Positions 1 to 45,951 of a stretch of DNA of 45,951 nt are shown here, piece by piece. The notes beneath the pieces are model-generated. The model was not told where the DNA came from. It did not search any database and saw nothing but the letters and a program-made list of their open reading frames with translations. How positions within the stretch are numbered: the first letter of the stretch is position 1; each line of letters begins with the position of its first letter. The DNA is from Basidiobolus meristosporus CBS 931.73 (lineage: Eukaryota > Fungi > Basidiobolomycota). A program made the position numbers and the translations under genes. The DNA is taken from assembly GCA_002104905.1 (NCBI GenBank), contig MCFE01000684.1, forward strand, positions 1-45,951, written 5' to 3'.

Positions 1-262
1 TGTTTAACGTAAGCATGATTGACATCTGAAATGGTGCCCACCTCCAAGCCCCAATGGTGGAATCTCCATGAATCAACAGGAAATTATGTCATACGGCTAC
101 GTAATTTACCACCCTGCCAAATCTCAAATAGTATTCGTAATCTCTTCATCAGATCCACGCCAGGTTCACTTTTTTTGAAATTCAGAAAAGCATACGTCCG
201 GCCACTACTTATTCTCTTGTTATCTTCTCTTCTTGTGTTATTTTATTCGACTTCTTCACAAA

Positions 263-3200
263 ATGGTAAACCCAACTATGCAACTCGGAAAAGTGATCCC
301 CTCCCCACATGGCTGACTGGTTTGTTTGCTTTGCTAGAGTAATATGGATGTTGATAAGTCCGAGACCACCATCGACGAAGGACTATACTCCAGACAATTG
401 TACTTTCTTCTTATCATCTATTCTCTCTTGTAGCATAATCTAACTTTTCTGACGTAGGTATGTCTTGGGACATGAAGCCATGGCTAAGATGAGCAGCGCT
501 AATGTGCTTCTTGTTGGTCTCAAGGGCCTGGGTGTTGAAATAGGTACGCAGGTGCTTTAAACAAGCCTTGTCCCTGTTTACGTTTCCGCTAACCTATTGT
601 GTCACATTTCCAGCTAAAAACGTTGTATTGGCCGGTGTCAAGAGTGTGACCCTATATGACCCTGAACCAGTCGAGATCTCCGACCTGTCTGCACAATTTT
701 TCCTCACCGAGGAAGATATTGGTAAAGGTAGAGCTGAAGCTTGCGTTCAGCGCCTTGCTGAGCTCAACCAATATGTCCCTGTCAGTGTTCTTGACGGTGA
801 ACTCACCACCGACAAATTAAGCCAGTTCAAGGTATGGTGTTCTTGGTTTTCGACAGTTCGTTCACTGTTGGCTGACATCAATTGTTCTAGGTTGTCGTTC
901 TTACTGAAGTTCCCTTGGAGCGTCAGCTTGAGATCAATGACTTCACTCACAAAAATGGAATCTACTCTATTGTTGCCGATGTTCGCGGTTTATTCGGGTA
1001 GGTTGTTGTCGCGCGAGCTTAATGTCTTCTGTGCCAACTGACCATTCCGATTGTTTATCTAGTATGGCCTTCTGTGACTTCGGAGAGGGCTTCGTCGTCA
1101 ATGATGCTACCGGCGAGAACCCACACACCTCAATGATTGCCGCCGTTTCAAAGGATGCTGAGGGTGTTGTGACTTGTCTTGACGAATCCAGACACGGCCT
1201 TGAGGATGGAGATTACGTTACATTCACTGAAATCAAGGGAATGGAGGAGCTCAATGGCTGCGAGCCTCAAAAGGTCAAGGTATTGGGGCCCTATACCTTC
1301 AGCATCGGAGACACCTCTGGATTCAGCGACTACGTCAGCGGCGGTGTCTTCACTCAAGTTAAAATGCCCAAGATCTTGAACTTCGTAAGTATTGCTAAGC
1401 GTTGTTATGCCCTGGGCGCTCTCTAACCTCATTGCTGGTAGAAATCGCTACGCGAGTCTCTTAAGGGATCTGAATTCTTGATCACTGACTTCGCCAAGTT
1501 TGACAAGCCTGCTCAGCTCCACGTTGGTTTCCAAGCCCTTAACGCCTTCCAGACCAAGCATTCGCAGCTTCCAAAGCCCAGGGATGAGGCCGATGCTAAC
1601 GAGGTCTTGCAGCTTGCTAATGAGATCAACAGCAAAGCTGAGGAAAAGACCGAGCTTTCCGACGAGTACATAAAGGAGGTTGCATACCAAGCCAAGGGCT
1701 ACCTGTCCCCCATGTGCGCCTTTTTGGGTGGTGTGGTTGCCCAAGAGGTGTTGAAAGCCTGCAGTGGAAAGTTCCACCCTATTTATCAATACCTCTATTT
1801 CGATTCGTTGGAGTCTCTCCCAACAAGCACCAAGTTGAACGCCGAAGAGTGCAAGCCTATTGGCTCTCGTTATGATGGACAAATCGCCGTATTTGGCCGT
1901 GAGTTCCAAGAGAAGATCGCCAACGTCAAGCAGTTCCTCGTTGGTGCCGGCGCCATTGGTTGCGAGATGCTCAAGAACTGGGGCATGATGGGTTTGGCCA
2001 CTGGCCACAATGGTGTTATCCATCTCACCGACATGGATACCATTGAGAAGAGTAATTTGAACAGACAGTTCTTATTCCGCTCTTCTGATGTAGGCCAGCT
2101 CAAGTCTGAAACTGCCACCAGAGCCATCGTCAAGATGAACCCCGACATCGCTGGAAAGATCGTCTCCCACCAAGACCGTATTGGTGTCGAGACCGAGAAC
2201 ATCTACAACGATAGCTTCTTCGAGTCGTTGGATGGTGTTACCAACGCTCTTGATAACGTGGAGACTCGTAAATACATGGACAGACGTTGCGTGTTGTTCA
2301 GAAAACCCCTCCTGGAATCTGGTACTCTTGGCACCAAGGGCAACACCCAGGTTGTCATTCCCTTCTTGACCGAGTCGTACTCTTCTTCCCAAGATCCTCC
2401 AGAGAAGTCGATCCCCATCTGTACATTGAAAAATTTCCCCAATGCCATTGAGCATACCATTCAATGGGCCCGTGATCTGTTTGAGGGTCTCTTCAAGCAA
2501 CAACCTGAGAACACCAACCTGTATCTTTCCCAATCCAACTACATTGAGCAATTGTTGAAGCAAGGAGGCAGCCAAAAGGATGTTCTTGATGGTATCACTA
2601 GCTGTCTAGTGACCGCCAAGCCAAGCTCTTTCCAAGATTGCGTTGCTTGGGCCAGATTGCAATTTGAGGAGCTTTATCACAACAACATCATGCAATTGCT
2701 CTTCAACTTCCCCAAGGACTCCGTCACCTCTACTGGTACCCTCTTCTGGTCTGGACCTAAGCGCGCCCCTACCGTCCTCAACTTTGACACCGAGGACAAA
2801 TTGCACATGGATTTCGTCATCGCCGGAGCCAACCTTCGTGCTTTCATTTTCGGCATCCCCGCTGAGACCGACGCCCGAAAGATTCGCGAGATGGTTGCCA
2901 ATGTCATGGTTCCCGAGTTCTCCCCACGTCAAGGAGTCAAGATCCAGGTCAATGAAAACGAGAACGACAGCTCAGCACAAAACACCGACGAGGCCGAGCT
3001 TGAGCAAACCATCAAATCCTTCCCCAAGCCAGAGAGCTTGGGTGGCTTGAGACTGAACCCAGTAGACTTCGAGAAGGACGATGATACCAACTTCCACATA
3101 GATTTCATTACCGCCGCCTCCAACCTCAGAGCCACTAATTATAATATCAATCTTGCTGACCGTCACAAGACCAAGTTCATCGCTGGCAAGATCATCCCCG

Positions 3201-3685
3201 CCATTGCGACCACCACCGCTCTGATCACAGGTCTGGTGTGTCTGGAATTGTACAAGATCATCGATGGCAAGACCAAGCTTGAAGACTACAAGAACGGCTT
3301 CGTGAATCTGGCCCTTCCATTCTTTGGGTTCTCCGAGCCCATCGCCGCCCCCAAATTCAAGTACCACGAGACCGAGTTCACCCTATGGGACCGGTTCGAC
3401 ATCAAGGGCGATATCACACTCCAAGAGTTCATCGATTACTTCCAGAAGACCCACGGGCTTGAGGTGACCATGGTCTCCTGCGGTGTGTCTATGCTCTACA
3501 GCTTCTTCATGCCCAAGAAGAAGCTTGACGAGCGCAAGAACATGAAGTTCTCCAAGCTGGTGGAAACCGTCTCCAGAAAGGAAATCCCAAGCCACGTTCA
3601 AGCATTGATTGTCGAGATCTGCGTGAACGACCGCGATGGAGAAGATGTTGAAGTGCCATATGTTCGTATCCAAATCCGCGATTAG
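263..3685 (+). CDS. UBA1: Ubiquitin-activating enzyme E1, multi-exon
   Basis: Spliced reading M|[21 protein letters not shown]|YVLGHEAM...LKGLGVEI|[14 protein letters not shown] 1478-3685 carries [31 protein letters not shown], the catalytic PICTLKNFP and a C-terminal UFD (EVPYVRIQI). The ATG-only first exon at 263-265 is inferred from GT..AG. Confidence 0.96.
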
Positions 3686-3795
3686 TTCTCATCTCAACAG
3701 ATCCCTAGAGAGCCCGGTGGGGAGGGGGAGGGGGTCAGCCTCTCACCTAGCCACACTAATTTTCTTCCGAATGAAATTGGAATATCTCTTGTCCA

Positions 3796-3815
3796 AGTCG
3801 AGTCGAGTCGAGTCG
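3796..3815. repeat. (AGTCG)4 microsatellite downstream of UBA1
   Basis: Four exact pentamer copies read directly. Confidence 0.9.
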
Positions 3816-4906
3816 CCAAATCCTTCGTATTAAATTAAAAGCCATAATAGCAATTGTGATCACTAGTCTTCTAACCAGATATGGTTCGCACCTTGGGTGC
3901 AAGGTTGTATGTGTCGTGGGCGCAGGGGTTTCGATCCGACGAAAGCGCGGCCCAGAGGTAACGTAGAATACGGGATGCACAGTGCAGCATAGAGGTTTCC
4001 ATCTTGGATGATCCCTGCTGGCTGAAGAGGTCAGGGGTGGAGCAAGAATGTAGGCCCAGGATGTTGATTCTGGCAGTCATGTACGGCCTACGACCAGCCA
4101 TTTTCTCCTTGATCACGATAATAACCAGTGATATGCAACAGCTCTCGGAGGGAATATGACCATGCGATCTTTTATTTCTCATACGTTGGATTGACAGCAG
4201 CTCTATTGCATCATATGAGCAACACAAATCTATCCTGTATGGTAGTTATCTGAACAGCCAAATCTAGCTAGTTTGCCAGACGCAGGTTCATGCATCTTCC
4301 ACTTCATATAAGCCCAAGGTCCATGCAAGTAATTAAGAAGGAAATTCCCGTTTTAAGAAAGTAACACACTTCGGCCTTGCGAGTTCTCTAATCCTGGCCT
4401 GAGGGCAGTCGCAGCCTTTGAACGCGAGAAGGCGAGCACCCAGCTACACGGGATACGGAGGGATTCCCGTGCTGCTGCTAAGCCTCTTCCCCTCCCCATT
4501 GTTACGCTGAGTTTGTTGGTGCTGCTTGGCCCGCATCGTTGATTAGAAAGGATCAGGTAATCGAATCCTCCCGGAGGAATAAGGAAGGCAGGCTATTTTC
4601 CCGATTGTATCACAAAATAGCTCAAGCATAGCGGGGAGCAGGTTGCAGCAATAGTTCAGGCGTGGTAGGCAATTTGTTTGTGTATAAACTAGCTGTAAGC
4701 TGATGTGCGAGTTTACATCCCCGGTTTCCTGTTTCAAGGTATCGGATTTCCTGAACCTTTATAAAGGAAAATACCTCGATGCCATTCAATCTGTTATCCG
4801 TATCCACACAGTTCCCAGCTGATTGCAGACAACTCACAGGACTAATAGGCTGTCCGTTCATTTGATATCGTATCAACAACGTTGCCCAGTAGCATCAGTG
4901 GGCAGT

Positions 4907-33862: not shown

Positions 33863-34053
33863 TTAGGGGGGTTAGGGGGAGACTGTCACCAACAGGTGAA
33901 ATCTTTGTTTCAGCTGAAACAACAAAGCCAGCACTACTGTTGTAGCTTTCAAACATGAGTGTGTAGGTGAGGGGAATTTGTAGGTAAGTTAGTCAGGAGA
34001 GATGATAGTTCTTCAGTGCTTATGACACTGTTCAGTGGGAAGGGGGTTAGGGG
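33863..34053 (-). mobile_element. LINE copy E: ~175-bp old, extremely 5'-truncated 3' end flanked by TTAGGG(G)n on both sides
   Basis: 33881-34046 aligns with the 3' end of copies A-C with many substitutions. It is preceded by TTAGGGGGGTTAGGGGG and followed by TTAGGGG. Confidence 0.85.
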
Positions 34054-34402
34054 TGTTGTAAGAGTCTTGGAGATATTGGAAGTGAATGGGAGAACAAGTA
34101 GATTATGTGGTTCTCACTTAATGATCTATTGAATGTAAAAGTAGTATTTATACTTTTACATGATCTTGGCATAGCAAACACGTAGAATAGGCTAAGGAAG
34201 GTCCCAAGAACATGTGTGCAAAGTTTGGGGCTGTTTGGACAACTTTGAGAATTTTCAAGTTCTGGGTACCTGGTATTTTGGTGAAAATATTCTAAGTAAA
34301 TCCCGACAAGGAATTTGGTCAGTATTCTCTAGGATTTGAAGGCAATAATCCAAGTGACCAAGTTAGGTGAATATTTAGGTGGAATTACAAATTTTTACAA
34401 CA
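34054..34402. mobile_element. Solo LTR (349 bp) with 5-bp target-site duplication AGGGG
   Basis: Termini TGTTGTA...TACAACA; AGGGG at 34049-34053 and again at 34403-34407. Confidence 0.85.
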
Positions 34403-36009
34403 AGGGGGGGGGAGAAAGTCACCAACAGGTGAGATCTTTATTTCAGTTGAAACAAAGAAGCCAGTGCTACTGTTGTTGCTTTGATACAAGAGTGTGTAGC
34501 TGAGGGGAATTTGTAGGTAAGCTAATAACAAGTGATGATAGTTCTTCAGTGCTCAAGACACTGTTCAGGGGGAAGGGTGGTAGCAAGAGGGGTAAGAATG
34601 ATTTGCAAGCAACATTAATGAGGGGAATATGATAAGGATTGATATTCAACATAAAGGGAGTGTCCTGCTTCAAATATTTTTGCCAAAGGTCTGTCAAGTA
34701 CTTTAGGTAGGCCAGTTTGGAATTTTCCAACTGCAGAATATAGTGAGCAAGCTTTTTGACTTCAGGATCTCCAAGTATAGTTCTCCAGCAGGAGCCAGGT
34801 GTAGTGTGGTGTGTTCTCTTCCAGGCATTGATCAGCAGGTTGTGCAGTGGTAAAGTCTGAGATATAATCTGGTTCTAAGGTAGAGAAGTCTGATCTTATA
34901 GGGCATAAACCCAAAACACCAAGAAAAGCATGTCTGTAAGGGCTTCCAGGCAGATGAGGCACCAAGGAGGCAATACACCAGACTGCAAGTGTATCAAGCT
35001 TAGTGCAGTCTCTAGAAGTAAGAGAGAGAAGTGGTAAACCAAATTTCATGACAGGGAAGACAAGCAGCTTGAGTAGAAGGAGGCAGCTGGGAGCTGAGGT
35101 TGTAGGAGAAGTAACAGCCAGTAGCTTGTGGAGTGCCAGTCTTGCAAGGATAATTCTCTTCTTCAAGTGTGCTCCAAAGTCAAGTCTAGTGGGAAAGATA
35201 GGAAAGCCAAGATATGTTGCAGAAACCTGAGCTGGTAGAGTGCAGTTCTCCAAGTTGATAGGACAACCCAAAGGTAATAGACTTGTTCCATCATTCCAGC
35301 TGATCATAGTGCCCAATAGTGCCATAGCATGCCAGATAGTGCCTGATCATGCCACAGAGTGCCAGATGGTGCCATACAGTGCCAATTTGGGATCAAAATT
35401 GACATGCATATGGCCCTAAAATATCAAATTAATAATAAAAAATACAGCACTCTCTGGCACTATGATCAGTGGCACAATGGAACAAGTCTACTGTCTTTGC
35501 AATGGAAAGCTGGATATTATTCTTCTGCAGATACTAGTGGATGGTCTGGGAGTCTTGTTGCACATTATAGGAGGATATTCTGATGTCATCAGCAAACAGA
35601 GTAACCAGGCAGTCAGCTGACAGTCTTAGGAAATCATTCAGGAAGATTGCAAACAGTATAGGGTCAAGAACAGAGCCTTGAACCACTCCATTAGGAACTG
35701 ATAACACAGCTGCTTGCTCACTTGGGTGCAGAATTCTTGCTTGTGGATCCAGAAACAGAGACCTGACAAGGAGAGTGAGGGAGGTACTGGAGAAGCATTG
35801 CAACTTGGACCAAAGCAGATTTTTGTCAACTGAATCAAAGGCCTTAGTAATATCAAGCAGAACAGAGGGATACTTGCACTGGAGAGAGTGATCTCAGCTA
35901 AGTATGACTGCATATTCCAAGGAGAGGCCAGGAACAATGCCAAACTGTGCAGGGTGAGACTTAAGGGAGTTAGAGTAGAGCTCCTGAGCAATCAGAAGCT
36001 CAAACACCT
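34403..36009 (-). mobile_element. LINE copy D: older, diverged RT/3' fragment interrupted by a MITE and ending at an LTR
   Basis: Colinear with copies A/B from the G-run to AAACACCT. The RT remnant NGVVQGSVLDPILFAIFLND...FADDI carries stops and frameshifts. Confidence 0.9.
35278..35490. mobile_element. MITE-like insertion (~213 bp) with ~35-bp imperfect terminal inverted repeats
   Basis: Absent from copies A/B at AAAGGTA|CTGTC. The ends are TAGACTTGTTCCAT...ATGGAACAAGTCTA, with inner arms CTGATCATAGTGCC / GGCACTATGATCAG. Confidence 0.88.
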
Positions 36010-36623
36010 TGTTGTATCCAAGAGAAAAGTGTAATAAAACTCTTGAATGAGTTAACTGAACCTAAGTGACAACTAAGTGCAGAACCTTAGAATTATCAAG
36101 AGTGTCAGAAATATTAGCAGAGAGGTTCTGATCTAATATTAGTCTTATATATAGCTGAGTTGGGCTATAAAGGTAACAGAGTAGGTTTGCTATGCAGGCT
36201 AGGCTTGGTGTTCTTGAGAGTGCTAAATATCCTAAGCTTGGGTAGAAACTAGAATGGATTTGTTGAATTCTTAATTTTGTTGAGACACAGACTAAACCAA
36301 AAGGTTCAGTAAACTTTATTTATACTTTTCTGATTGAGTTGCATTAGTAAGCACCAAGAGACTGGACTAATTGAAATCTGTTGGGGTGTTGATAGGTGCA
36401 TAAGATAAATGAAAAATTGCATCATTAATCAGCTGATGTCTTGGCAACTGCTAAGTGGTTGGATAAATCTCAGATGACTAATCACTTGGAAAGGCTTAGC
36501 AGATCAGTTGAGTATGTAATGACCACATGATAATTAATCAGGTGTGACAGCTAAAAATAGATTCTGAGAAGTGATAAAATAAATCATAACAGGGATTAGT
36601 TATGTTTGTGTTGTGCATCAACA
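36010..36623 (-). mobile_element. LTR (614 bp), inverted relative to the homologous LTR at 36685-37303
   Basis: Termini TGTTG...CAACA; its reverse complement aligns along its length with 36685-37303. No TSD is seen. Confidence 0.75.
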
Positions 36624-36684
36624 TTTAAAACTTAGCCAATTTTACTCCATTTGAAATTCTAGTACCCTAACTGACTTTCCCTAA

Positions 36685-37303
36685 CCCAAACATAACAAAT
36701 CCCAGTTACAGTTTATTTTATCCCACCTCAGAATCTATTTTTAGCTATCACACCTGATCTATTTTCAAATGGTCATTACGTTATCCACATATCTGCCAAG
36801 CCTTCCCAGGTGACTAGTCATCTGAGATCTATCCAACCACTGTGCAGTTGCCAAGACATCAGTTGATTGATGATGTAGTTTTCATTTATCTTATGCACCT
36901 ATGAACACCCAAGTTGATTTCTATCAATCCAGTCCCTTGGCGCTTACTAATTCAACTTGATCAGAAAAGTATAAATAAAGTTTACTGAACCTTTTGGTTT
37001 AGTGTGTGTCTCAACAAAATTAAGATTCTGTCTCAGCAAAAATAAGAATCCAACAATTCCGTTCTAGTTTCTATCCAAGCCTAGTATATCTAGCACTCCA
37101 AAGAACACCAAGCCTAGCCTGCCTAGCAAACAAATATCATTGTCTTTATAGCCAACCCAGCTATATCCAAGACCAATATTAGATCAGAATCTTTCTGCTA
37201 ATATTTCCGCCACTCTGACAATTCTAAGATTCTGCACTTAATTGTCCCTTTGGTTCAGTTAAACCATTCAAGAGTTTTATTACACTTTCTCTTGGATACA
37301 ACA
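36685..37303 (+). mobile_element. LTR of the same family, probably the 5' LTR of a decayed element
   Basis: Ends in GATACAACA; has a TATA-like GTATAAATA at ~36969; a gag-like ORF follows. The 5' TG terminus is not clear. Confidence 0.7.
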
Positions 37304-37344
37304 TTTTTTTTCGTTGAATTCCATTACATTCAGCCAATTAGAAG

Positions 37345-37692
37345 ATGTCCTCAGCAGCAAGCAATCCAAACCTTTCCATGTTGGAAGAAGCCAGGAGAAA
37401 TCAGGAAGAACTTACTAAACAGCTTGAAAGCATCATGCTTGAAAGAGATACCATGATGCTTGAGCACTCAAAGCTTGCCAAAACAAGATCTGATAATCAC
37501 CGTAGAGATGAACTCCCTGAAGTTATATCCGGTTACCAAGATGAAATTGGAATAATTAAGGAAGCACTGGAGAATATTGCCATAGTAATTGACAGCATTG
37601 AAAATCCGCCAAGCCTTGCTCTGCACCAGCCACCTAGAAGTCATGCCTTTGAATCCTCCAGATCTACATCTGTTGTGTTGTATTATGATTAG
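37345..37692 (+). pseudogene. Putative gag N-terminal remnant (coiled-coil)
   Basis: 115-aa ATG ORF starting 42 bp after the LTR end, with a helical EEARRNQEELTKQLE segment. No diagnostic gag motif is seen. Confidence 0.4.
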
Positions 37693-37991
37693 TTTGGGGC
37701 TTGTTCTACAATGTAGAGGCTAATCAACAATATACAACAACTTCCAGTATGCTAATACTGAAATAGTTTATTGGGAGTTTGATATACCAATAGAAGATAT
37801 AACTTTCACTAATTTCCTCAATCTTAGGCTCAAAATATACTGTAGGCAGTGTTTATCACTTCTACAGCAGTGTTCTGACCTTCTGTTGACTAATGGGCTT
37901 ATTTACTTTTATAGTAACTTTTCCTTATTTGGAAGTCACTTTCCTTTCTGAGAAAATATTTCCTAATATGGAAATTCTGAGCTCCCCTTTA

Positions 37992-38236
37992 ACCTAAAGG
38001 GGTGTGTTGTAGAAGTCTCTAAAGGGGTCTTTAGACCTAAAGGGGTGTCTAAAGGGGTGTCTTTAGAGTAAAGGGGCTTCTTGTAGTGGTCTCTAAAGTG
38101 GACTTTACACTAAAGGGGTGCCTAAAGGGGCTTCTTTAGAGTAAAGGGGTTTCTTAAAGGGGTCTCTAAAGGGGTCTTTAGACTAAAGGGGTGTCTAAAG
38201 GGGTGTCTTTAGAGTAAAGGGGTTTCTTAGAGGGGA
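37992..38236 (+). repeat. TAAAGGGG-core minisatellite with 73-bp higher-order period
   Basis: CTTTAGAGTAAAGGGG recurs at 38061, 38134 and 38207. Sub-units are 17/12/13/19/12 bp. Confidence 0.9.
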
Positions 38237-38394
38237 CTTTTCCAACAGAAAAGTGGTAGTTTCTTGTAGAACTTAGATTGGATTCTTGTGAGCTTTGCAG
38301 TCTCTTTACTGATGTAGTACCGATCAAAGTCAGAATACTCAACAGTGCAAGTGATGCAGGGGAAGTCTTATAACCTTTAAACTTGTAATTGTAG

Positions 38395-38913
38395 TGTGGA
38401 GATTCTGGAAAGAGAGGCTCTCTCTTTATTTTTCAGCTGGGGAAGTCATATATATGAAAATTTTGAAGGATCAAAGTTTTTGGGCGATTGCGCAAGCAAT
38501 ACACGTGATACAAAGCTGAAATTTTGCAGTGGCGCAGATCGGACATAGGCGCAGCACCTGTGAAAATTTCACGTGATTTGATTGGCTGGTTCAAAAGTTA
38601 CACACGATCAAAGTCACCATAGTAATCCTAGCAATAAGGCATAGTATATATAATAGTTGGACTCTTTTGGTCATAACTCCTTAAGTACTGCTTCAAATGA
38701 GCTGTAATTTGAAACATGTGTTGGCTACTACGTGTTCTGTATGACATAATATTCTTGGATGGATTGCTTGTCAGGGTCTGGGGCATTTGCTCTTCAAAGT
38801 TGGAAATTCTTGATCTTTCTGTTGTGTGTTACGATAGCAAAAAGCAAAATAAAGAAATGAGTGCAATATTGGTTTAGAGATATTGTAGTAATGGAATACT
38901 TTCCATTACCACA
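38395..38913 (-). mobile_element. 3' LTR of a Ty3/Gypsy element (519 bp), preceded by a polypurine tract
   Basis: Termini TGTGG...CCACA; the minus strand reads TAGGGGGGACT immediately before TGTGG, right after the integrase stop. Confidence 0.78.
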
Positions 38914-38921
38914 AGTCCCCC

Positions 38922-39971
38922 CTAACTTTGAGAAATAATGCCCTCATTATTACTTCTGATATGGAACTTCTTCAATCTGTTACCAGGTTGTGTCAGTGCA
39001 AGTGGTGTACCGTCAAGTTCTGCTAGTTTGTAAGATCCATTTTTGTTTGCATGTATGATCTTGTAGGGACCTTGCCATCGCATATCCAGCTTGGATGCCT
39101 TGTTTCTTTGGCTTTTTGTGTTGTGAAGTAGTATCAACTCACCTACTTCTAACAATGTTTTTCTTAGGCATTTTTGAGCGTCAAAGTACTCCTTGCCAGC
39201 CATTCTGGATTTCTTCAGGTTTTCTATTGCATTCTGTTGCAGAGTGTGTGCTTGTTGAATCTGTTGTACTCTTGCTAGCAATAGCTCTGATGTTGTTGTT
39301 GTTGGTTTCCATGGGAGGGTAAGCCAATTCTCAAAAGATATGTCTATCGGCAAAACAGCATCATGTCCATATATTAAAAAAAATGGTGTATACCCTGTAC
39401 TTCTTTTAACCGTGACTCTATCAGACCAAATTGCTGCATGAAAGTTATTTGCCCATTTGTTGGGTTCTTCATAGCTAAGCTTTGCTAATGTGTTTGCAAA
39501 AGCAGAATGTCCATGTTCAACTGGTGAGTTTGCTTGTGGGTGATATGGCATAGTATGTATAAGCTTGGTTCCATGCTTTGTTGCTAGTGCTTGTATTTCA
39601 TAAGATCCACATTCTCCATTGTCTGCAATAAGGGTGCCAACTGAACCATGTCTGAGATATACATCTTCTTTGAGAAATCTTGCTACTGCTTTTGCATTGG
39701 CTTGTTTTAGCATTCTAGCCTCTATCCAACCAGTAAAGTTATCACGACAGTCCACCACATACTTATACCCAGCTGTTGCCCTTGGTAAATGTATAATATC
39801 TACATGTGCAATTTGCCAAGCATAAGATGTGTATATACTGTGAAGTGGTTCATGCATCTTTTGGTTGTCTCTTCTTTGACATGGAATACATGATTTCACA
39901 TATTCTTTTGTGTTGGTGTAAAGTGTTGGCCAAAAATACCGTAAGGAGATTTTTGCATATGTTGATGTAAT
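38922..39971 (-). pseudogene. Ty3/Gypsy integrase, 5'-truncated inside the HHCC zinc finger
   Basis: YFWPTLY...VKSCIPCQRR, AHVDII, RDNFTGWIEA, IADNGE, YHPQANSPVE and WQGPYKI (GPY/F motif). The upstream pol is missing. Confidence 0.92.
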
Positions 39972-39988
39972 TAGGGTAGGGGGGGGGG
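39971..39988 (+). repeat. Telomere-like junction TTAGGG TAGGGGGGGGGG
   Basis: Read directly between the integrase and the 3' end of LINE copy A. Confidence 0.85.
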
Positions 39989-41876
39989 AGACAGTCACCA
40001 ACAGGTGAAATCTTTATTTCAGTTGAAACAAAGAAGCCAGCGCTACTGTTGTAGCTTTGATACAAGAGTGTGTAGCTGAGGGGAATTTGTAGGTAAGTTA
40101 ATAAGAAGTGATGATAGTTCTTCAGTGCTCAAGACACTGTTCAGTGGGAAGGGGGGTAGCAAGAGAGGTAAGAATGACTTGTGAACAACATTAATGAGGG
40201 GAATGTGATAAGGATTGATATTCATCATAAAGGGAGTGTGCTGCTGCAGATATTGCTGCCAAAGGTCTGTCAAGTACTTCAGGTAGGCCAGCTTGGGTTT
40301 TTCTGACTGCAGAATATAGTGAGCAAACTTCTTGACTTCAGGATCTCCAAGTATAGTTCTCCAGCAGGAGTCAGGTGTTGTGTGGTGTGTTCTCTTCCAG
40401 GCCTTAATCAGTGGGTTGTTGCAGTTGTGAAGTCTGAGGTATAATCTGGTTCTAAGGTAGAGAAGTCTGATCTTATAGGGCATAAACCCAAAAGCACCAA
40501 GAATAGCATGTCTGTAGGGGCATTGAGGCAAATGAGGCACCAAGGAGGTAATGCACCATACTGCAAACTTGTCAAGCTTAGTGCAGTCTCTAGAAGTAAG
40601 AGAGAGAAGTGGTAAGCCAAATTCCAGGACAGGGAAGACAAACTGCTTGAGTAGAAGGAGGCAGCTGGGAGCTGAAGTTGTAGGAGGAGTAACAGCCAGT
40701 AGCTTGTGGAGTGCCTGTCTTGCCAGGATAATTTGCTTCTTCAGGTGTGCTCCAGAGTCTAGTCCAGTAGGAAGGAAAGGAAAGCCAAGATATGTAGCAG
40801 AAACCTGAGCAGGTAGAGTGGAGTTCTCCAAGTTGATGGGAGAGCCCAAAGGTACTGTCTTTGCAATGGAAAGCTGGAGATTATTCTTCTGCAGATACTG
40901 GTGGATGGTCTGGGAGTCTTGTTGCACATTGGAGGAGGATATTCTGATGTCATCAGCAAAGAGAGTAACCAGGCAGTCAGCTGAGAGTCTTGGGAAATCA
41001 TTCAGGAAGATGGCAAACAGTATAGGACCAAGCACAGACCTTGAACCACTCCATTAGGAACTGAGAACACAGCTGATTGCTCACTTGGGTGCAGAATTCT
41101 TGCTTGTGGATCCAGAAACAGAGACCTGACAAGGAGGGTGAGAGAGGTACTGGAGAAGCATTGCAACTTGGACCAAAGCAGATTTCTGTCAACTGAATCA
41201 AAGGCCTTAGTAATATCAAACAGAACAGAGGGATACTTGCACTGGAGAGAGTGATCTTGGCTAAGTATGACTGCATATTCCAAGGAGAGGCCAGGAACAA
41301 AGCCAAACTGTGCAGGATGAAACTTGAGGGAGTCAGAGTAGAGCTCCTGAGCAAGCAGAAGCTCAAACACCTTTCTGCAGGTGGGCAGCAGAGATATTGG
41401 CCTGTAGGAGCTAGGATCCAGGTGCTTTCCTTTACCCTTGTACAGTGGCAGAACATTTGCAAAGGACCATTCCTCAGGAGTAGAAAGCTGGGCTGAGCAT
41501 TGCTGAAACAGTGGAAGCAGAAGTGCAGACATGGCCTTGGTACTAGTCTTCAGAAGCTCATAGGAGATTGTGTCCACACCTGGAGCAGTAGAGTTGGGAA
41601 GCCTCTTGAGCACATTATGGATTCTCTTTGATCAAGTGCAAGTGGGATGGGCAGAGTCTTGAAGTCAGGATGAAAGCCAGGAGTTGAGTACTGCTTTGTA
41701 GAGAAGAAGATGTTAGCCAGCTGTTCTGTTGAAGGTAACTTCCTGGAAGAGGGCTCATTGCCTGTAGAGTCTTGATACTGTTCTTGTTATAGAGTTGAAG
41801 ATTGCAGAGCAAGATCATAATGATCAGAGTGAGTATGCAGAGTGTGTGAATGCTGGAGTGTGTATGCTGTCAGAGG
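39979..41876 (-). mobile_element. LINE copy A: young, 5'-truncated (~1.9 kb), RT plus 3' end
   Basis: Nearly identical to 41880-43790. RT motifs YRPISLL, QFGF, FDITKAFDSV and FADDI are present, with single-base frameshifts at ~41038 and ~41626. Confidence 0.95.
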
Positions 41877-41939
41877 TTAGGGGGGAGACAGTCACCAACA
41901 GGTGAAATCTTTATTTCAGTTGAAACAAAGAAGCCAGCG

Positions 41940-44708
41940 CTACTGTTGTAGCTTTGATACAAGAGTGTGTAGCTGAGGGGAATTTGTAGGTAAGTTAATA
42001 AGAAGTGATGATAGTTCTTCAGTGCTCAAGACACTGTTCAGTGGGAAGGGGGGTAGCAAGAGAGGTAAGAATGACTTGTGAACAACATTAATGAGGGGAA
42101 TGTGATAAGGATTGATATTCATCATAAAGGGAGTGTGCTGCTGCAGATATTGCTGCCAAAGGTCTGTCAAGTACTTCAGGTAGGCCAGCTTGGGTTTTTC
42201 TGACTGCAGAATATAGTGAGCAAACTTCTTGACTTCAGGATCTCCAAGTATAGTTCTCCAGCAGGAGCCAGGTGTTGTGTGGTGTGTTCTCTTCCAGGCC
42301 TTAATCAGTGGGTTGTTGCAGTTGTGAAGTCTGAGGTATAATCTGGTTCTAAGGTAGAGAAGTCTGATCTTATAGGGCATAAACCCAAAAGCACCAAGAA
42401 TAGCATGTCTGTAGGGGCATTCAGGCAAATGAGGCACCAAGGAGGTAATGCACCATACTGCAAACTTGTCAAGCTTAGTGCAGTCTCTAGAAGTAAGAGA
42501 GAGAAGTGGTAAGCCAAATTCCAGGACAGGGAAGACAAACTGCTTGAGTAGAAGGAGGCAGCTGGGAGCTGAAGTTGTAGGAGGAGTAACAGCCAGTAGC
42601 TTGTGGAGTGCCTGTCTTGCCAGGATAATTCTCTTCTTCAGGTGTGCTCCAGAGTCTAGTCCAGTAGGAAGGAAAGGAAAGCCAAGATATGTAGCAGAAA
42701 CCTGAGCAGGTAGAGTGGAGTTCTCCAAGGTTGATGGGAGAGCCCAAAGGTACTGTCTTTGCAATGGAAAGCTGGAGATTATTCTTCTGCAGATACTGGT
42801 GGATGGTCTGGGAGTCTTGTTGCACATTGGAGGAGGATATTCTGATGTCATCAGCAAAGAGAGTAACCAGGCAGTCAGCTGAGAGTCTTGGGAAATCATT
42901 CAGGAAGATGGCAAACAGTATAGGACCAAGCACAGAGCCTTGAACCACTCCATTAGGAACTGAGAACACAGCTGATTGCTCACTTGGGTGCAGAATTCTT
43001 GCTTGTGGATCCAGAAACAGAGACCTGACAAGGAGGGTGAGAGAGGTACTGGAGAAGCATTGCAACTTGGACCAAAGCAGATTTCTGTCAACTGAATCAA
43101 AGGCCTTAGTAATATCAAACAGAACAGAGGGATACTTGCACTGGAGAGAGTGATCTTGGCTAAGTATGACTGCATATTCCAAGGAGAGGCCAGGAACAAA
43201 GCCAAACTGTGCAGGATGAAACTTGAGGGAGTCAGAGTAGAGCTCCTGAGCAAGCAGAAGCTCAAACACCTTTCTGCAGGTGGGCAGCAGAGATATTGGC
43301 CTGTAGGAGCTAGGATCCAGGTGCTTTCCTTTACCCTTGTACAGTGGCAGAACATTTGCAAAGGACCATTCCTCAGGAGTAGAAAGCTGGGCTGAGCATT
43401 GCTGAAACAGTGGAAGCAGAAGTGCAGACATGGCCTTGGTACTAGTCTTCAGAAGCTCATAGGAGATTGTGTCCACACCTGGAGCAGTAGAGTTGGGAAG
43501 CCTCTTGAGCACATTATGGATTCTCCTTTGATCAAGTGCAAGTGGGATGGGCAGAGTCTTGAAGTCAGGATGAAAGCCAGGAGTTGAGTACTGCTTTGTA
43601 GAGAAGAAGATGTTAGCCAGCTGTTCTGTTGAAGGTAACTTCCTGGAAGAGGGCCTCATTGCCCTGTAGAGTCTTGATACTGTTCTTGTTATAGAGTTGG
43701 AAGATTGCAGAGGCAAGAACTCATAATATGATCCCAGAGCTGAGTATGCAGAGTGTGGTGAATTGCCTTGGAGTGGTGTATTGCTGTCAGGAGGAGTTTC
43801 TCTGTTTTTGGGTTAGGGAAACTCAGGTAGCTTTGTTGCAGGGCTGAAACAATGGATTCCCATTTTCTTGAGGTAACAGCAGTAGTCTTGCATGGCAGTG
43901 AGAGGGAGGCAGACACCAGAATCAGATGCTTCACAAAGAGCCAGGCATAGTTGAGATCATCTGGCAGAGAAAGTAGCAAACTGGCAAGCTTCAAGTAGTT
44001 CCCAAAGTCTTTCTTCTGATTCTTGGTAGCTTTGTGGGTGAGCACAGTAAGTTTTGGCAGCTTCTTCTTCACAACTGGTTGCATAGAAAGGGACCAGGCT
44101 GGGTGGTCAGAGGCTCTCAAGGATCCTAGCTCAGCTCCAGAGAATTGCTTAACTTCATTCACAAAGTAGAGGGCAGCAGCAGAAGGGCAGATCCAGTCAA
44201 CACATCTTTTCTCAGATTGAGCACCTAGTGCTAGCAGATGGCTTTCTCTCAGGAAGTTCAGTAGGAATGTAGACCTTGGCTTCATTCTTGCAGTCAGAGT
44301 AGTCTTGTTCTCAGGATGGGGAATGTTGAGATCTCCAAGCAAGATAATAGGTGTTGATATAGATTGCTGGTATTGCTGAACTTTCTGGCATATAACTTGC
44401 ACTTCCTGAAGGGCAAGACTTGGAGGCAGATAGCAGAGCACCAGACTGATAGTTGGCAACTGGAGAGCAGCACAGTAAGGGGAGTAAAGAGGAACACAGA
44501 GCTGAGGAGTATTGATGGTAGAAGAGATGAAGCAGATAGAGGAGGTATTCTTTGTTCTAGGAGTAGAAAAGCAATATAGATTAGTCAAAAGTATAGAGGG
44601 TAGCTGGACATCAATCAAACACAGGAGGGAAAATCTTGAAAGAAGTCTCTCTAGAGTTGGTCTTGATGGCTGTATGCTGTTGCAGTTAAGCAACAGAACT
44701 TCAGGTAG
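41940..44708 (-). CDS. LINE ORF2 (APE endonuclease-reverse transcriptase), ~920 codons when frameshifts are repaired from sister copies
   Basis: Joined from ORFs 43689-44693, 42487-43716 and 41940-42899. The extra G at ~42730 is absent in copies A and D, and there is an indel cluster at 43640-43795. Confidence 0.85.
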
Positions 44709-45116
44709 TCAGGCAGAGGTTGTAGCTTCTTCAGAGGCAGCATTGACAATGTGACCTGCAGAGTCCCAGAGCTCTTCAAATGGTGCATCACTTAAGTCAG
44801 CAAGGAGGGAAATGGCATGATTCTTGAGGAAGTATGCCACATCATAGGAGGGGGCTTGTCTCTTGATGGCAGCAAAGAAAGACAGAATGGCAACATGGGC
44901 TGGAGGCTTGTTGAACAGTAGAGAGTCAGAGGATTCAGATTCTTCAGGCACTATCTTGAAGTCAGTTTTCAGCCAGTTAAGGTTCTTCTCCACAAAGGCA
45001 ACAAATGGGTCAGCAATGTTTTGGTCTAGGATAACCTCCAGAATCTTCCCTTTTCTCCAGGCCAGGTTGACAATTCTTGAGAGCTGAATATTGCATGCTT
45101 GAGTGCTTCTGATGTT
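44709..45116 (-). CDS. LINE ORF1, C-terminal part (no ATG; probably 5'-truncated)
   Basis: Open frame RIVNLAWRKGKILEVILDQNIADPFVAFVEKNL...EEATTSA*, in the same frame as ORF2. Confidence 0.6.
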   Translation of the reverse strand, partial: NIRSTQACNIQLSRIVNLAWRKGKILEVILDQNIADPFVAFVEKNLNWLKTDFKIVPEESESSDSLLFNKPPAHVAILSFFAAIKRQAPSYDVAYFLKNHAISLLADLSDAPFEELWDSAGHIVNAASEEATTSA

Positions 45117-45150
45117 GAATGGGAGTCAGGGAATGCTTCAGTACACACAG

Positions 45151-45169
45151 TAGGTAGGGTTAGGGGGGG
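45151..45169 (+). repeat. Telomere-like junction TAGG TAGGG TTAGGGGGGG
   Basis: Read directly between the 5' end of copy B and the 3' end of copy C. Confidence 0.85.
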
Positions 45170-45951
45170 AGACAGTCACCAACAGGTGAAATCTTTATTT
45201 CAGTTGAAACAAAGAAGCCAGCGCTACTGTTGTAGCTTTGATACAAGAGTGTGTAGCTGAGGGGAATTTGTAGGTAAGTTAATAAGAAGTGATGATAGTT
45301 CTTCAGTGCTCAAGACACTGTTCAGTGGGAAGGGGGGTAGCAAGAGAGGTAAGAATGACTTGTGAACAACATTAATGAGGGGAATGTGATAAGGATTGAT
45401 ATTCATCATAAAGGGAGTGTGCTGCTGCAGATATTGCTGCCAAAGGTCTGTCAAGTACTTCAGGTAGGCCAGCTTGGGTTTTTCTGACTGCAGAATATAT
45501 TGAGCAAACTTCTTGACTTCAGGATCTCCAAGTATAGTTCTCCAGCAGGAGCCAGGTGTTGTGTGGTGTGTTCTCTTCCAGGCCTTAATCAGTGGGTTGT
45601 TGCAGTTGTGAAGTCTGAGATATAATCTGGTTCTAAGGTAGAGAAGTCTGATCTTATAGGGCATAAACCCAAAAGCACCAAGAATAGCATGTCTGTAGGG
45701 GCATTCAGGCAAATGAGGCACCAAGGAGGTAATGCACCATACTGCAAACTTGTCAAGCTTAGTGCAGTCTCTAGAAGTAAGAGAGAGAAGTGGTAAGCCA
45801 AATTCCAGTACAGGGAAGACAAACTGCTTGAGTAGAAGAAGGCAGCTGGGAGCTGAAGTTGTAGGAGGAGTAACAGCCAGTAGCTTGTGGAGTGCCTGTC
45901 TTGCCAGGATAATTCTCTTCTTCAGGTGTGCTCCAGAGTCTAGTCCAGTAG
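45163..45951 (-). mobile_element. LINE copy C: young copy running off the window end
   Basis: Nearly identical to the 3' 0.8 kb of A and B, with a few private SNPs (e.g. ATATATTGAG, CCAGTACAGG). Confidence 0.95.

Follow-up and report, generated by a model that had tools for sequence, protein, structure and literature searches.

The right end of a Basidiobolus meristosporus CBS 931.73 contig (GCA_002104905.1, MCFE01000684.1) is a one-way stack of 5'-truncated copies of an APE-type LINE that ends in the telomeric repeat instead of poly(A), and the same kind of stack lies directly under the TTAGGG cap at true chromosome termini elsewhere in this genome. The window analysed here is the whole contig, 45,951 nucleotides long. 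We found no paper describing this enzyme type at fungal chromosome ends: searches for Basidiobolus telomere retrotransposons and for fungal APE-type telomere LINEs returned nothing relevant, and the papers searched describe fungal telomere LINEs only of the REL/CRE type. The features of the stack are as follows.

33863-33879 (+): base of the stack, TTAGGGGGGTTAGGGGG, joining unique DNA to the 3' end of copy E; nothing left of 33869 matches any of about 55 subtelomeric loci.
33880-34050 (-): copy E, the 3'-terminal 171 nt of the LINE and the oldest copy.
34047-34053 (+): TTAGGGG tract on the truncated 5' end of E.
34054-34403 (no strand assigned): 350-bp repeat with inverted ends (TGTTGTAA...TTACAACA) between the cap tract of E and the G-run of D, found in both orientations in other subtelomeres.
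34404-34412 (+): G9 run, the complement of the C-tail of copy D, with no TTA beside it.
34413-36010 (-): copy D, the 3'-terminal ~1.39 kb (full-length coordinates 3160-4546), interrupted at 35277-35488.
35277-35488 (no strand assigned): 212-bp MITE-like insertion in D with 14-bp terminal inverted repeats (TAGACTTGTTCCAT / ATGGAACAAGTCTA).
36010-37303 (no strand assigned): another subtelomeric repeat, present as an inverted pair (36010-36612 reversed, 36609-37303 forward), abutting the 5' end of D with no telomeric tract; the same D-type junction is seen on another contig (L028).
38922-39970 (-): Ty3/gypsy-type integrase fragment (Integrase_H2C2, rve, SH3_Tf2-1), cut off at 39970 and joined there to the tail tract of A.
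39971-39988 (+): junction tract TTAGGGTAGGGGGGGGGG before copy A.
39989-41876 (-): copy A, 1.89 kb, 5'-truncated at full-length coordinate 2638, with a frameshift near 41000-41035.
41875-41885 (+): junction GGTTAGGGGGG between the 5' end of A and the 3' end of B; the GG is shared with A.
41886-45157 (-): copy B, 3.27 kb, 5'-truncated inside ORF1 at full-length coordinate 1275, holding the 3' UTR module (41886-41939), ORF2 (41940-44708), the RT domain (about 42751-43314), the APE domain (43980-44693) and the ORF1 C-terminal fragment with its UGA (44709-45125), with two frameshifts, near 42700 and 43715 (other copies show indels at 43714/43716).
45151-45169 (+): junction TAGGTAGGGTTAGGGGGGG between the 5' end of B and the 3' end of C.
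45170-45951 (-): copy C, the 3'-terminal 782 nt, running off the end of the contig.

The original prediction placed five 3' ends of one APE+RT family, all in one orientation, at 33880, 34413, 39989, 41886 and 45170, and this observation is confirmed exactly. A blastn search of the window with copy B recovered five minus-strand copies: E (33870-34050, 90% identity), D (34407-35276 plus 35489-36010, 92-95%, split by the 212-bp insert), A (39983-41876, 98.7%), B itself (41880-45157) and C (45158-45951, 99.4%, cut by the contig end). No junction carries poly(A), and each copy is joined through a G-run that is usually preceded by TTA or TA. On the plus strand the junctions read TTAGGGGGGTTAGGGGG then AGACTG for E, G9 then AGAAAG for D, TTAGGGTAG10 then AGACAG for A, GGTTAG6 then AGACAG for B, and TAGGGTTAG7 then AGACAG for C. 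D alone lacks TTA; as the 350-bp element sits between a TTAGGGG and the G9 of D, we infer that it may have split an original TTAG(n) junction. Copies A, B and C abut directly, and A and B have different 5' ends. There are no target-site duplications, because the flanks of each copy are the ends of other copies. The predicted fall in divergence from left to right also holds, with median identities to 55-70 other genomic copies of 89.7% for E (55 copies), 91-95% for D and 98.3-99.0% for A, B and C, giving an age order of E, then D, then A/B/C. This gradient was seen only in this window, however, and the arrays on contigs C1, C2 and C22 are uniformly young. Chance is excluded, since TAA follows the C-run at 37 of 54 distinct genomic junctions against 2.8% expected (P about 1e-44), although the remaining 17 junctions lack a full TAA.

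To ask whether this architecture is a general feature of chromosome ends, we mapped the 3' ends across the genome. The 3'-end pattern occurs 73 times forward and 758 times reverse (about 831 ends), while (CCCTAA)4 occurs 81 times forward and 7604 times reverse, so that both show the same strand bias. Of 41 sense-on-plus 3' ends, 36 lie within 8.6 kb of a contig start, where 13% would be expected (P about 7e-27); distances to ends rest on this left-end statistic and on the contigs of known length. The host telomere repeat is TTAGGG. Four contigs (C1, C2, C21 and C22) were chosen by their telomere repeat alone, and three of them carry this LINE within about 8 kb of the cap, while the fourth, C21, has a tRNA-headed SINE directly under its cap. 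At C1, C2, C22, C835 and C1071 the outermost 5' end, of this LINE or of a short unassigned stretch beyond it, is capped by about 30-40 TTAGGG repeats, and in C2, C1071 and C835 the long array directly abuts a 5'-truncated or full-length 5' end. The window's own contig stops inside copy C without reaching a cap. Arrays also occur at an internal site (C613, about 98 kb into a 218-kb contig) and head-to-head (C781).

The junctions show successive additions. The 45 distinct 5' junctions have truncation points spread over coordinates 1 to 4376; about 31 abut another tailed 3' end and 3 abut long caps. Short-read unitigs show at least 46 different joints between a truncated copy and a tail, although these are too short to confirm the specific A/B and B/C joints. 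Nested insertion was rejected, as neighbouring copies do not continue each other. Across the 54 distinct 3' junctions the telomeric extension is 0-19 nt, whereas terminal caps measure 185-240 bp.

The full element is about 4.55 kb, with a 5' UTR of about 225 nt, an ORF1 of 502 aa, a UGA stop, an ORF2 of about 925 aa in the same frame, and a 3' UTR of about 55 nt with two hairpins, followed by ...GUCU, a C-run and usually UAACCC. It has no LTRs. ORF1, intact in the copy at locus L053, contains a zinc-finger-like motif, a coiled coil and a conserved C-terminal domain. A Pfam search of ORF1 gave only coiled-coil noise, and a search of the Atlas pointed to unnamed clusters from Mucoromycota and Zoopagomycota. 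The predicted ORF1 C-terminal fold is an RRM-like beta-alpha-beta-beta-alpha unit plus helices, with no significant PDB match (best E = 0.04). The reverse transcriptase of ORF2 matches RVT_1 (E = 4e-25 and 1.9e-24), has its YxDD box as FADD at residue 598, and has L1 ORF2p as its best solved-structure match; the nearest proteins outside the family are unnamed and 32% identical or less.

The N-terminal APE domain was less easily recognized from sequence. Pfam hits fall below the curated cut-off (23 bits against 27.4), and the domain on its own gave no sequence match to solved structures. Nevertheless, the alignment keeps N, Y, GDLN, D and SDH, with only a conserved E-to-D change, and an AF2 model (pLDDT 65) matches ExoIII, APE1, R1Bm EN and TRAS1 EN at probability 1.0. 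The domain looks catalytically competent and is as conserved as the linker and C-terminal regions (43-55% identity), so it is probably used, as judged from sequence and predicted structure alone. No RHD/N, R/KPD or CCHC pattern of a REL endonuclease was found in ORF2.

The 3' tail is conserved. A relative at 58% protein identity and another at 63%, from six other public samples in all, keep the hairpins and the CCCCC-TAACCC tail, whereas more distant LINEs end in (ATT)n or an A-run. The 3' UTR folds with a z-score of -3.5. A consensus fold of five sequences gave two hairpins, but their conserved base pairs never vary, and there is therefore no covariation support; Rfam gave no match. A search for RNA runs found none, so the tail of the transcript is inferred from the DNA copies.

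The interpretation offered in the original prediction is partly supported. Its fungal host holds (the window's E1 gene is 100% identical to the B. meristosporus CBS 931.73 protein), as do the APE-type LINE, the TTAGGG repeat, the polarity of the arrays relative to the contig end, their position at chromosome termini and the statement that MoTeR and Cnl1 are REL-type (PMC12857005). The proposed mechanism, in which an RNA tail anneals to the natural G-strand end and is copied without endonuclease, is favored by the short junction tracts but is not shown. Two details required correction: copy B is not full-length, as it lacks about 1.27 kb (5' UTR and most of ORF1), and APE-bearing telomere LINEs are known outside fungi (TART/TAHRE, TRAS/SART, Tx1-1_ACar).

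We consider this to be a subtelomeric stack built by a telomere-specialized non-LTR retrotransposon. What the data establish directly is that copies are added one after another in a single orientation, with 3' ends toward the chromosome body and 5' ends outward; that most are 5'-truncated at scattered points; that the outermost 5' end of a stack is capped by about 200 bp of TTAGGG at the termini described above; and that inner junctions keep only 0-19 nt of telomeric sequence. The remainder is our inference, namely that the C-rich/CCCUAA RNA tail pairs with the G-strand 3' end of a chromosome tip that has lost nearly all of its cap, that the RT copies the RNA onto that end, and that telomerase, itself inferred only from the perfect caps added to unrelated 5' ends, then re-caps it. 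The short tracts argue for addition onto such nearly uncapped ends, most simply by end-priming, and we hold this explanation with moderate confidence.

The main alternative is a TRAS/SART-like or repeat-specific APE LINE, in which the APE would nick duplex TTAGGG at a defined bond, the RNA tail would pair with the nicked G-strand, and the element would insert into the cap or into the short tracts between stacked copies. The intact, conserved APE domain means that APE-made nicks are not excluded, and the orientation relative to the repeat is fixed, as in TRAS. APE LINEs that target simple repeats carry the target repeat, not poly(A), at their 3' end, and Tx1-1_ACar and TRAS/SART show that APE LINEs can target telomeric repeats (PMC10088271). 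Insertion into the short inner tracts would also give short tracts on both sides. However, random nicking in the cap would leave long proximal remainders, and none of the 54 junctions keeps more than 19 nt; the junction at the base of the window's stack is also short (17 nt). No copy was seen at the (CCCTAA)2 motif in the element's own 5' UTR or at the CCCTAACCC motif inside the SINE, albeit in small samples, and, the internal array on C613 aside, copies are confined to contig ends although single TTAGGG hexamers are common elsewhere. We favor the natural chromosome end as primer, though not decisively, and regard an APE-made nick as the less likely, but still possible, route.

Subtelomeric recombination of a few old insertions, by unequal exchange, break-induced replication or segmental duplication, seems improbable as the main source of the arrays. 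Some blocks are duplicated between ends, as shown by the recurrence of the 5' flank junction of D on L028 and the shared, inverted 36010-37303 repeat, and together with the head-to-head and internal arrays this indicates that recombination also shapes them. Yet there are 45 different 5' and 54 different 3' junctions in about 55 loci, in addition to the joints in the unitigs, and many copies are 99-100% identical with ORF2 open over 900 aa or more; recombination cannot create new truncation points that are each sealed by a tail. An assembly artefact is less likely still. The contig does stop inside a copy, and the assembly holds many short contigs with a strong orientation bias, but the same architecture appears on dozens of contigs, including contigs of 264 kb and 345 kb that end in caps, in unitigs of separate runs from the same sample, and in contigs from other samples.

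Among known systems, the endonuclease-deficient Penelope-like elements Athena (bdelloid rotifers) and Coprina (basidiomycetes) are terminally located (PMC8557442), and embedded telomeric repeats are mentioned for Athena (PMC10088271). Their 3' ends reportedly carry short reverse-complement telomeric repeats instead of poly(A), as seen here, with 5'-truncated copies stacked at chromosome ends in telomerase-positive hosts and pairing with the G-overhang as the proposed mechanism (Gladyshev and Arkhipova 2007). The element described here differs in having a LINE-type RT, an N-terminal APE domain and an ORF1, and no hammerhead or other Rfam family was found. Drosophila HeT-A/TART/TAHRE (Jockey clade) share the one-way head-to-tail arrays with 3' ends toward the centromere and variable 5' truncation, and TART and TAHRE keep an APE-type domain although they attach to chromosome ends; there, however, the junctions are poly(A) and the host has no telomerase, whereas here the junctions are C-run plus TAACCC and TTAGGG caps are present. 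Bombyx TRAS/SART (R1 clade), Tx1-1_ACar and other repeat-specific APE LINEs share APE plus RT, a fixed orientation relative to the telomeric repeat and a telomerase-positive host, but insert into long repeat tracts, with repeats on both sides, and TRAS/SART end in poly(A), neither of which is seen at our 54 junctions. The CRE-clade elements MoTeR, FoTeR and Cnl1 share fungal hosts, subtelomeric arrays and a link to telomere repeats, but carry a C-terminal restriction-enzyme-like endonuclease (CCHC ... RHD/N ... E ... R/KPD ... D/E; PMC12857005) in place of the N-terminal APE domain. Copies of Zepp (Chlorella, L1-like) also accumulate at a chromosome end, with telomere repeats reportedly added to a truncated 5' end (Higashiyama 1997, cited in PMC10088271), but Zepp has poly(A) tails and no telomere-complementary tail.

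A broader reading, which we put forward only tentatively and at somewhat less than even likelihood, is that this LINE lineage and its dependents (the tRNA-headed SINE and a second LINE lineage) have evolved a telomere-complementary RNA tail that lets them be copied, without endonuclease cutting, onto chromosome ends that have lost their cap. They would then act as a second, retrotransposon-based end-healing system working beside telomerase in a fungus, an intermediate between ordinary telomerase telomeres and the all-retrotransposon telomere of Drosophila, and a convergence with Penelope-like elements.

Retrotransposons specialized for telomeres are few, and each has shaped ideas about how telomerase and mobile RTs relate. 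With about 830 3' ends of one family, the system is abundant enough to study, and offers a testable case of whether a LINE can use a natural chromosome end as primer while keeping its endonuclease, and of whether such elements rescue critically short telomeres. This fungus combines features so far seen only apart: an APE-bearing LINE, as in TART or TRAS; a telomere-complementary tail instead of poly(A), as in endonuclease-less Penelope-like elements; a working telomerase cap, as inferred from the terminal repeats; and non-autonomous passengers that share the same tail.

The stretch is a complete contig of 45,951 bp, from an 89.5-Mb genome assembled in 1,366 contigs. Its left part encodes an E1 ubiquitin-activating enzyme that is 100% identical to the protein of Basidiobolus meristosporus CBS 931.73. 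The host is therefore an early-diverging fungus, as the original prediction had assumed. The underlying observation, five poly(A)-less 3' ends of one family in a single orientation, was confirmed: from 33,863 to the right end, a blastn comparison placed five copies of one retroelement (E, D, A, B and C) on the minus strand, among several other features.

33880-34050, minus strand: copy E
34047-34053: TTAGGGG tract
34054-34403: 350-bp repeat with inverted ends (TGTTGTAA...TTACAACA)
34413-35276 plus 35489-36010, minus strand: copy D
35277-35488: 212-bp MITE-like insertion with 14-bp terminal inverted repeats, inside old copy D
36010-37303: ~700-bp subtelomeric repeat, present as an inverted pair meeting at about 36610
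38922-39970: Ty3/gypsy-type integrase ORF, cut off at 39970
39989-41876, minus strand: copy A
41886-45157, minus strand: copy B
45170-45951, minus strand: copy C, cut by the contig end

None of these copies has poly(A). On the plus strand each body is preceded by a G-run of 5 to 10 bases, and in four of the five this run follows TTA or TA. Copy D is the exception, with only G9, and the 350-bp repeat separates that G9 from the TTAGGGG tract. We infer that this repeat may have been inserted into an original TTAG(n) junction. Copies of it occur in both orientations in other subtelomeres, and one of these (on L035; L numbers denote loci that we retrieved) is truncated and healed by TTAGGGTTAGGG. 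The integrase ORF is joined at its cut end to TTAGGGTAG10 plus copy A, and looks like a broken or eroded end that was healed and then extended.

Copies A, B and C abut directly. Median identity to 55-70 other genomic copies rises from E (89.7%) through D (91-95%) to A, B and C (98.3-99.0%). Nothing to the left of 33,869 matches any of about 55 subtelomeric loci examined, and the tail of E therefore marks the base of the stack.

The ORFs in B and A match RVT_1 (E = 4e-25) and, weakly, the endonuclease families PF14529 and PF03372. Copy B differs by one base from most other copies at 43714-43716 and at about 42700, and these differences break ORF2, while A has its own frameshift near 41000-41035; these could be real decay or homopolymer errors of the long-read assembly. 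Other genomic copies (L031 and L032) carry an uninterrupted APE+RT reading frame of at least 902 codons, in which the RT has the FADD box and no REL-endonuclease motif was found. The APE assignment rests on three lines of evidence. The N, Y, GDLN, D and SDH positions are conserved, with D in place of the usual E, a substitution shared by both relatives whose sequence reaches that position (P0001 and P0003). The predicted fold (pLDDT 65) matches ExoIII, APE1, R1Bm EN and TRAS1 EN at probability 1.0. Finally, the domain is as conserved as the linker and C-terminal regions, at 43-55% identity, against 59-72% for the RT.

Longer copies elsewhere show that B is truncated, beginning at coordinate 1275, inside ORF1. 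The full element is about 4.55 kb and starts at CTCTTTAAATTAGTC. Its 5' UTR is about 225 nt, and in full-length copies (L049, L048, L050 and L053) it holds two telomere repeats (CAACCCTAACCCTAAT) about 145 nt from the start, together with a ~100-bp unit that is single in some copies and doubled in others. ORF1 has 502 codons and is intact in L053. It ends in UGA, and ORF2 follows in the same frame without an AUG (…TSA* LPEVLLLNCNS; L053:1453-2958, minus strand, and 44706-44711 in the window), so that ORF2 may be made by stop-codon readthrough or non-AUG reinitiation. The relative on L041 instead has an ATG 3 nt after the ORF1 stop.

The last 60-70 nt are predicted to fold into two hairpins followed by a pyrimidine tail (z = -3.5), although the conserved stem pairs never vary in our five sequences and covariation gives no support for the structure. 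The same module closes at least four other families in this genome, including a tRNA-headed SINE and a second LINE lineage that is 67% identical to the sequence P0005. The SINE, seen on L051 (for example minus strand, sense positions 128-660), L033 and L035, is a ~520-nt element with a tRNA-like head (box-B-like GGTTCAAATCC) and the LINE-type two-hairpin tail, and is stacked between telomeric tracts.

Such arrays sit at real chromosome ends. The host telomere repeat is TTAGGG. The pattern (CCCTAA)4 occurs 81 times forward and 7,604 times reverse, and the 3'-end pattern of the family shows the same bias, occurring 73 times forward and 758 times reverse. The TTAGGG arrays thus lie almost only at right contig ends and are numerous enough to imply a few hundred capped contig ends, many on contigs of ~20 kb; very many chromosome ends, unresolved haplotypes or an assembler habit may be the cause. 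Of four contigs selected only for their telomere repeat (C1, 345 kb; C2, 264 kb; C21 and C22), three carry this LINE in the window's orientation within about 8 kb of a terminal (TTAGGG)30-40 array, while the fourth, C21, has the SINE directly under its cap. In C2 and two further contigs, C1071 and C835, the cap abuts a truncated or full-length 5' end directly. For copies in the opposite orientation, 36 of 41 lie within 8.6 kb of a contig start, against 13% expected (P about 7e-27). There are exceptions: a stack of tailed elements lies about 98 kb into the 218-kb contig C613 (L036, C613:91000-100900), and two arrays face each other 3' end to 3' end on C781 (L035, C781:52000-61900). A fossil end, a fold-back, a fusion or a misassembly are possible causes.

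Among 45 distinct 5' junctions, truncation points range from coordinate 1 to 4376; about 31 abut the tail of another tailed element and 3 abut long caps. Neighbouring copies never continue each other, so these are successive additions and not nested insertions. Short-read unitigs from runs of the assembly's own sample show at least 46 different joints of truncated copies to the tail, and the junction diversity is therefore not a product of the long-read assembly. Among 54 distinct 3' junctions, the C-run is 2-10 bases long (mode 6) and is followed by TAA in 37 (P about 1e-44 against chance). The telomeric extension is 0-19 nt and stops in any phase. Terminal caps, in contrast, measure 185-240 bp.

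The one-way polarity is what target-primed reverse transcription from the G-strand 3' end predicts, but the contrast between short inner tracts and long caps is the most informative result. If the element were primed from normal telomeres, inner tracts of up to about 200 bp should be common, and the same holds if it were inserted at random positions in the cap after an APE nick, as TRAS and SART are. None of the 54 junctions exceeds 19 nt, and the junction at the base of the window's stack is also short. While the polarity, the successive additions and the tract lengths are direct observations, what follows from them here is inference: that copies are added to ends that have lost nearly all of their cap, that the C-run/CCCUAA tail pairs with what remains, and that telomerase re-caps the new end afterwards. 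The caps sit on unrelated 5' ends, which is the mark of de novo addition, and the variable C-run length fits a GGG-ended primer annealing anywhere within the C-run of the RNA.

The original prediction is partly supported, but its mechanism, in which the RNA tail anneals to the telomere end and is reverse-transcribed onto it, is favoured by the short tracts without being shown, since on present evidence the 3'-OH may be supplied either by the chromosome end itself or by the endonuclease. The APE is conserved and looks functional from its sequence and predicted fold, and a repeat-specific APE that nicks the short inner tracts or the innermost repeats of the cap would give much the same picture. 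Weak counter-evidence, from small samples, is that no insertions were seen at the (CCCTAA)2 motif of the element's own 5' UTR, and none at the CCCTAACCC motif inside the SINE. On balance we consider end-priming slightly more likely than not and APE-nicked telomeric targets possible but unlikely. Recombination or artefact seems very unlikely as the main explanation, although recombination clearly contributes, because D and its flank recur on another contig (L028), where the ~700-bp subtelomeric repeat again flanks a D-like LINE fragment.

The fungal telomere LINEs in the papers we found (MoTeR, FoTeR and Cnl1) group in the CRE clade and carry a REL endonuclease (PMC12857005), whereas the element described here carries a predicted APE domain. 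A 2023 catalogue lists SART/TRAS, GilM/T, Zepp, MoTeR, Tx1-1_ACar, Athena and the Drosophila elements, and has no fungal APE-type entry (PMC10088271). Literature searches for Basidiobolus together with telomeres and retrotransposons found nothing relevant. The system works most like the endonuclease-less Penelope-like elements, in its telomeric tail, and like TART/TAHRE, in its terminal arrays and retained APE, but it fails defining features of each of those families.

To gain insight into the age of the trait, we searched for relatives among 5.8 billion proteins. The only close ones are five proteins at 48-80% identity; everything else is 32% identical or less, and only over the RT. The contigs of four of the five relatives, from eight other public samples, show the same ORF1-plus-ORF2 layout. 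Where a contig reaches the 3' end, in six of the samples, it shows the same hairpins and a CCCCC-TAACCC(TAA) tail; one is followed by another tailed element and one by a 5' UTR-like start. Two more distant LINEs end in (ATT)n or an A-run. The telomere tail is therefore a trait of this lineage, kept across 58-63% protein identity.
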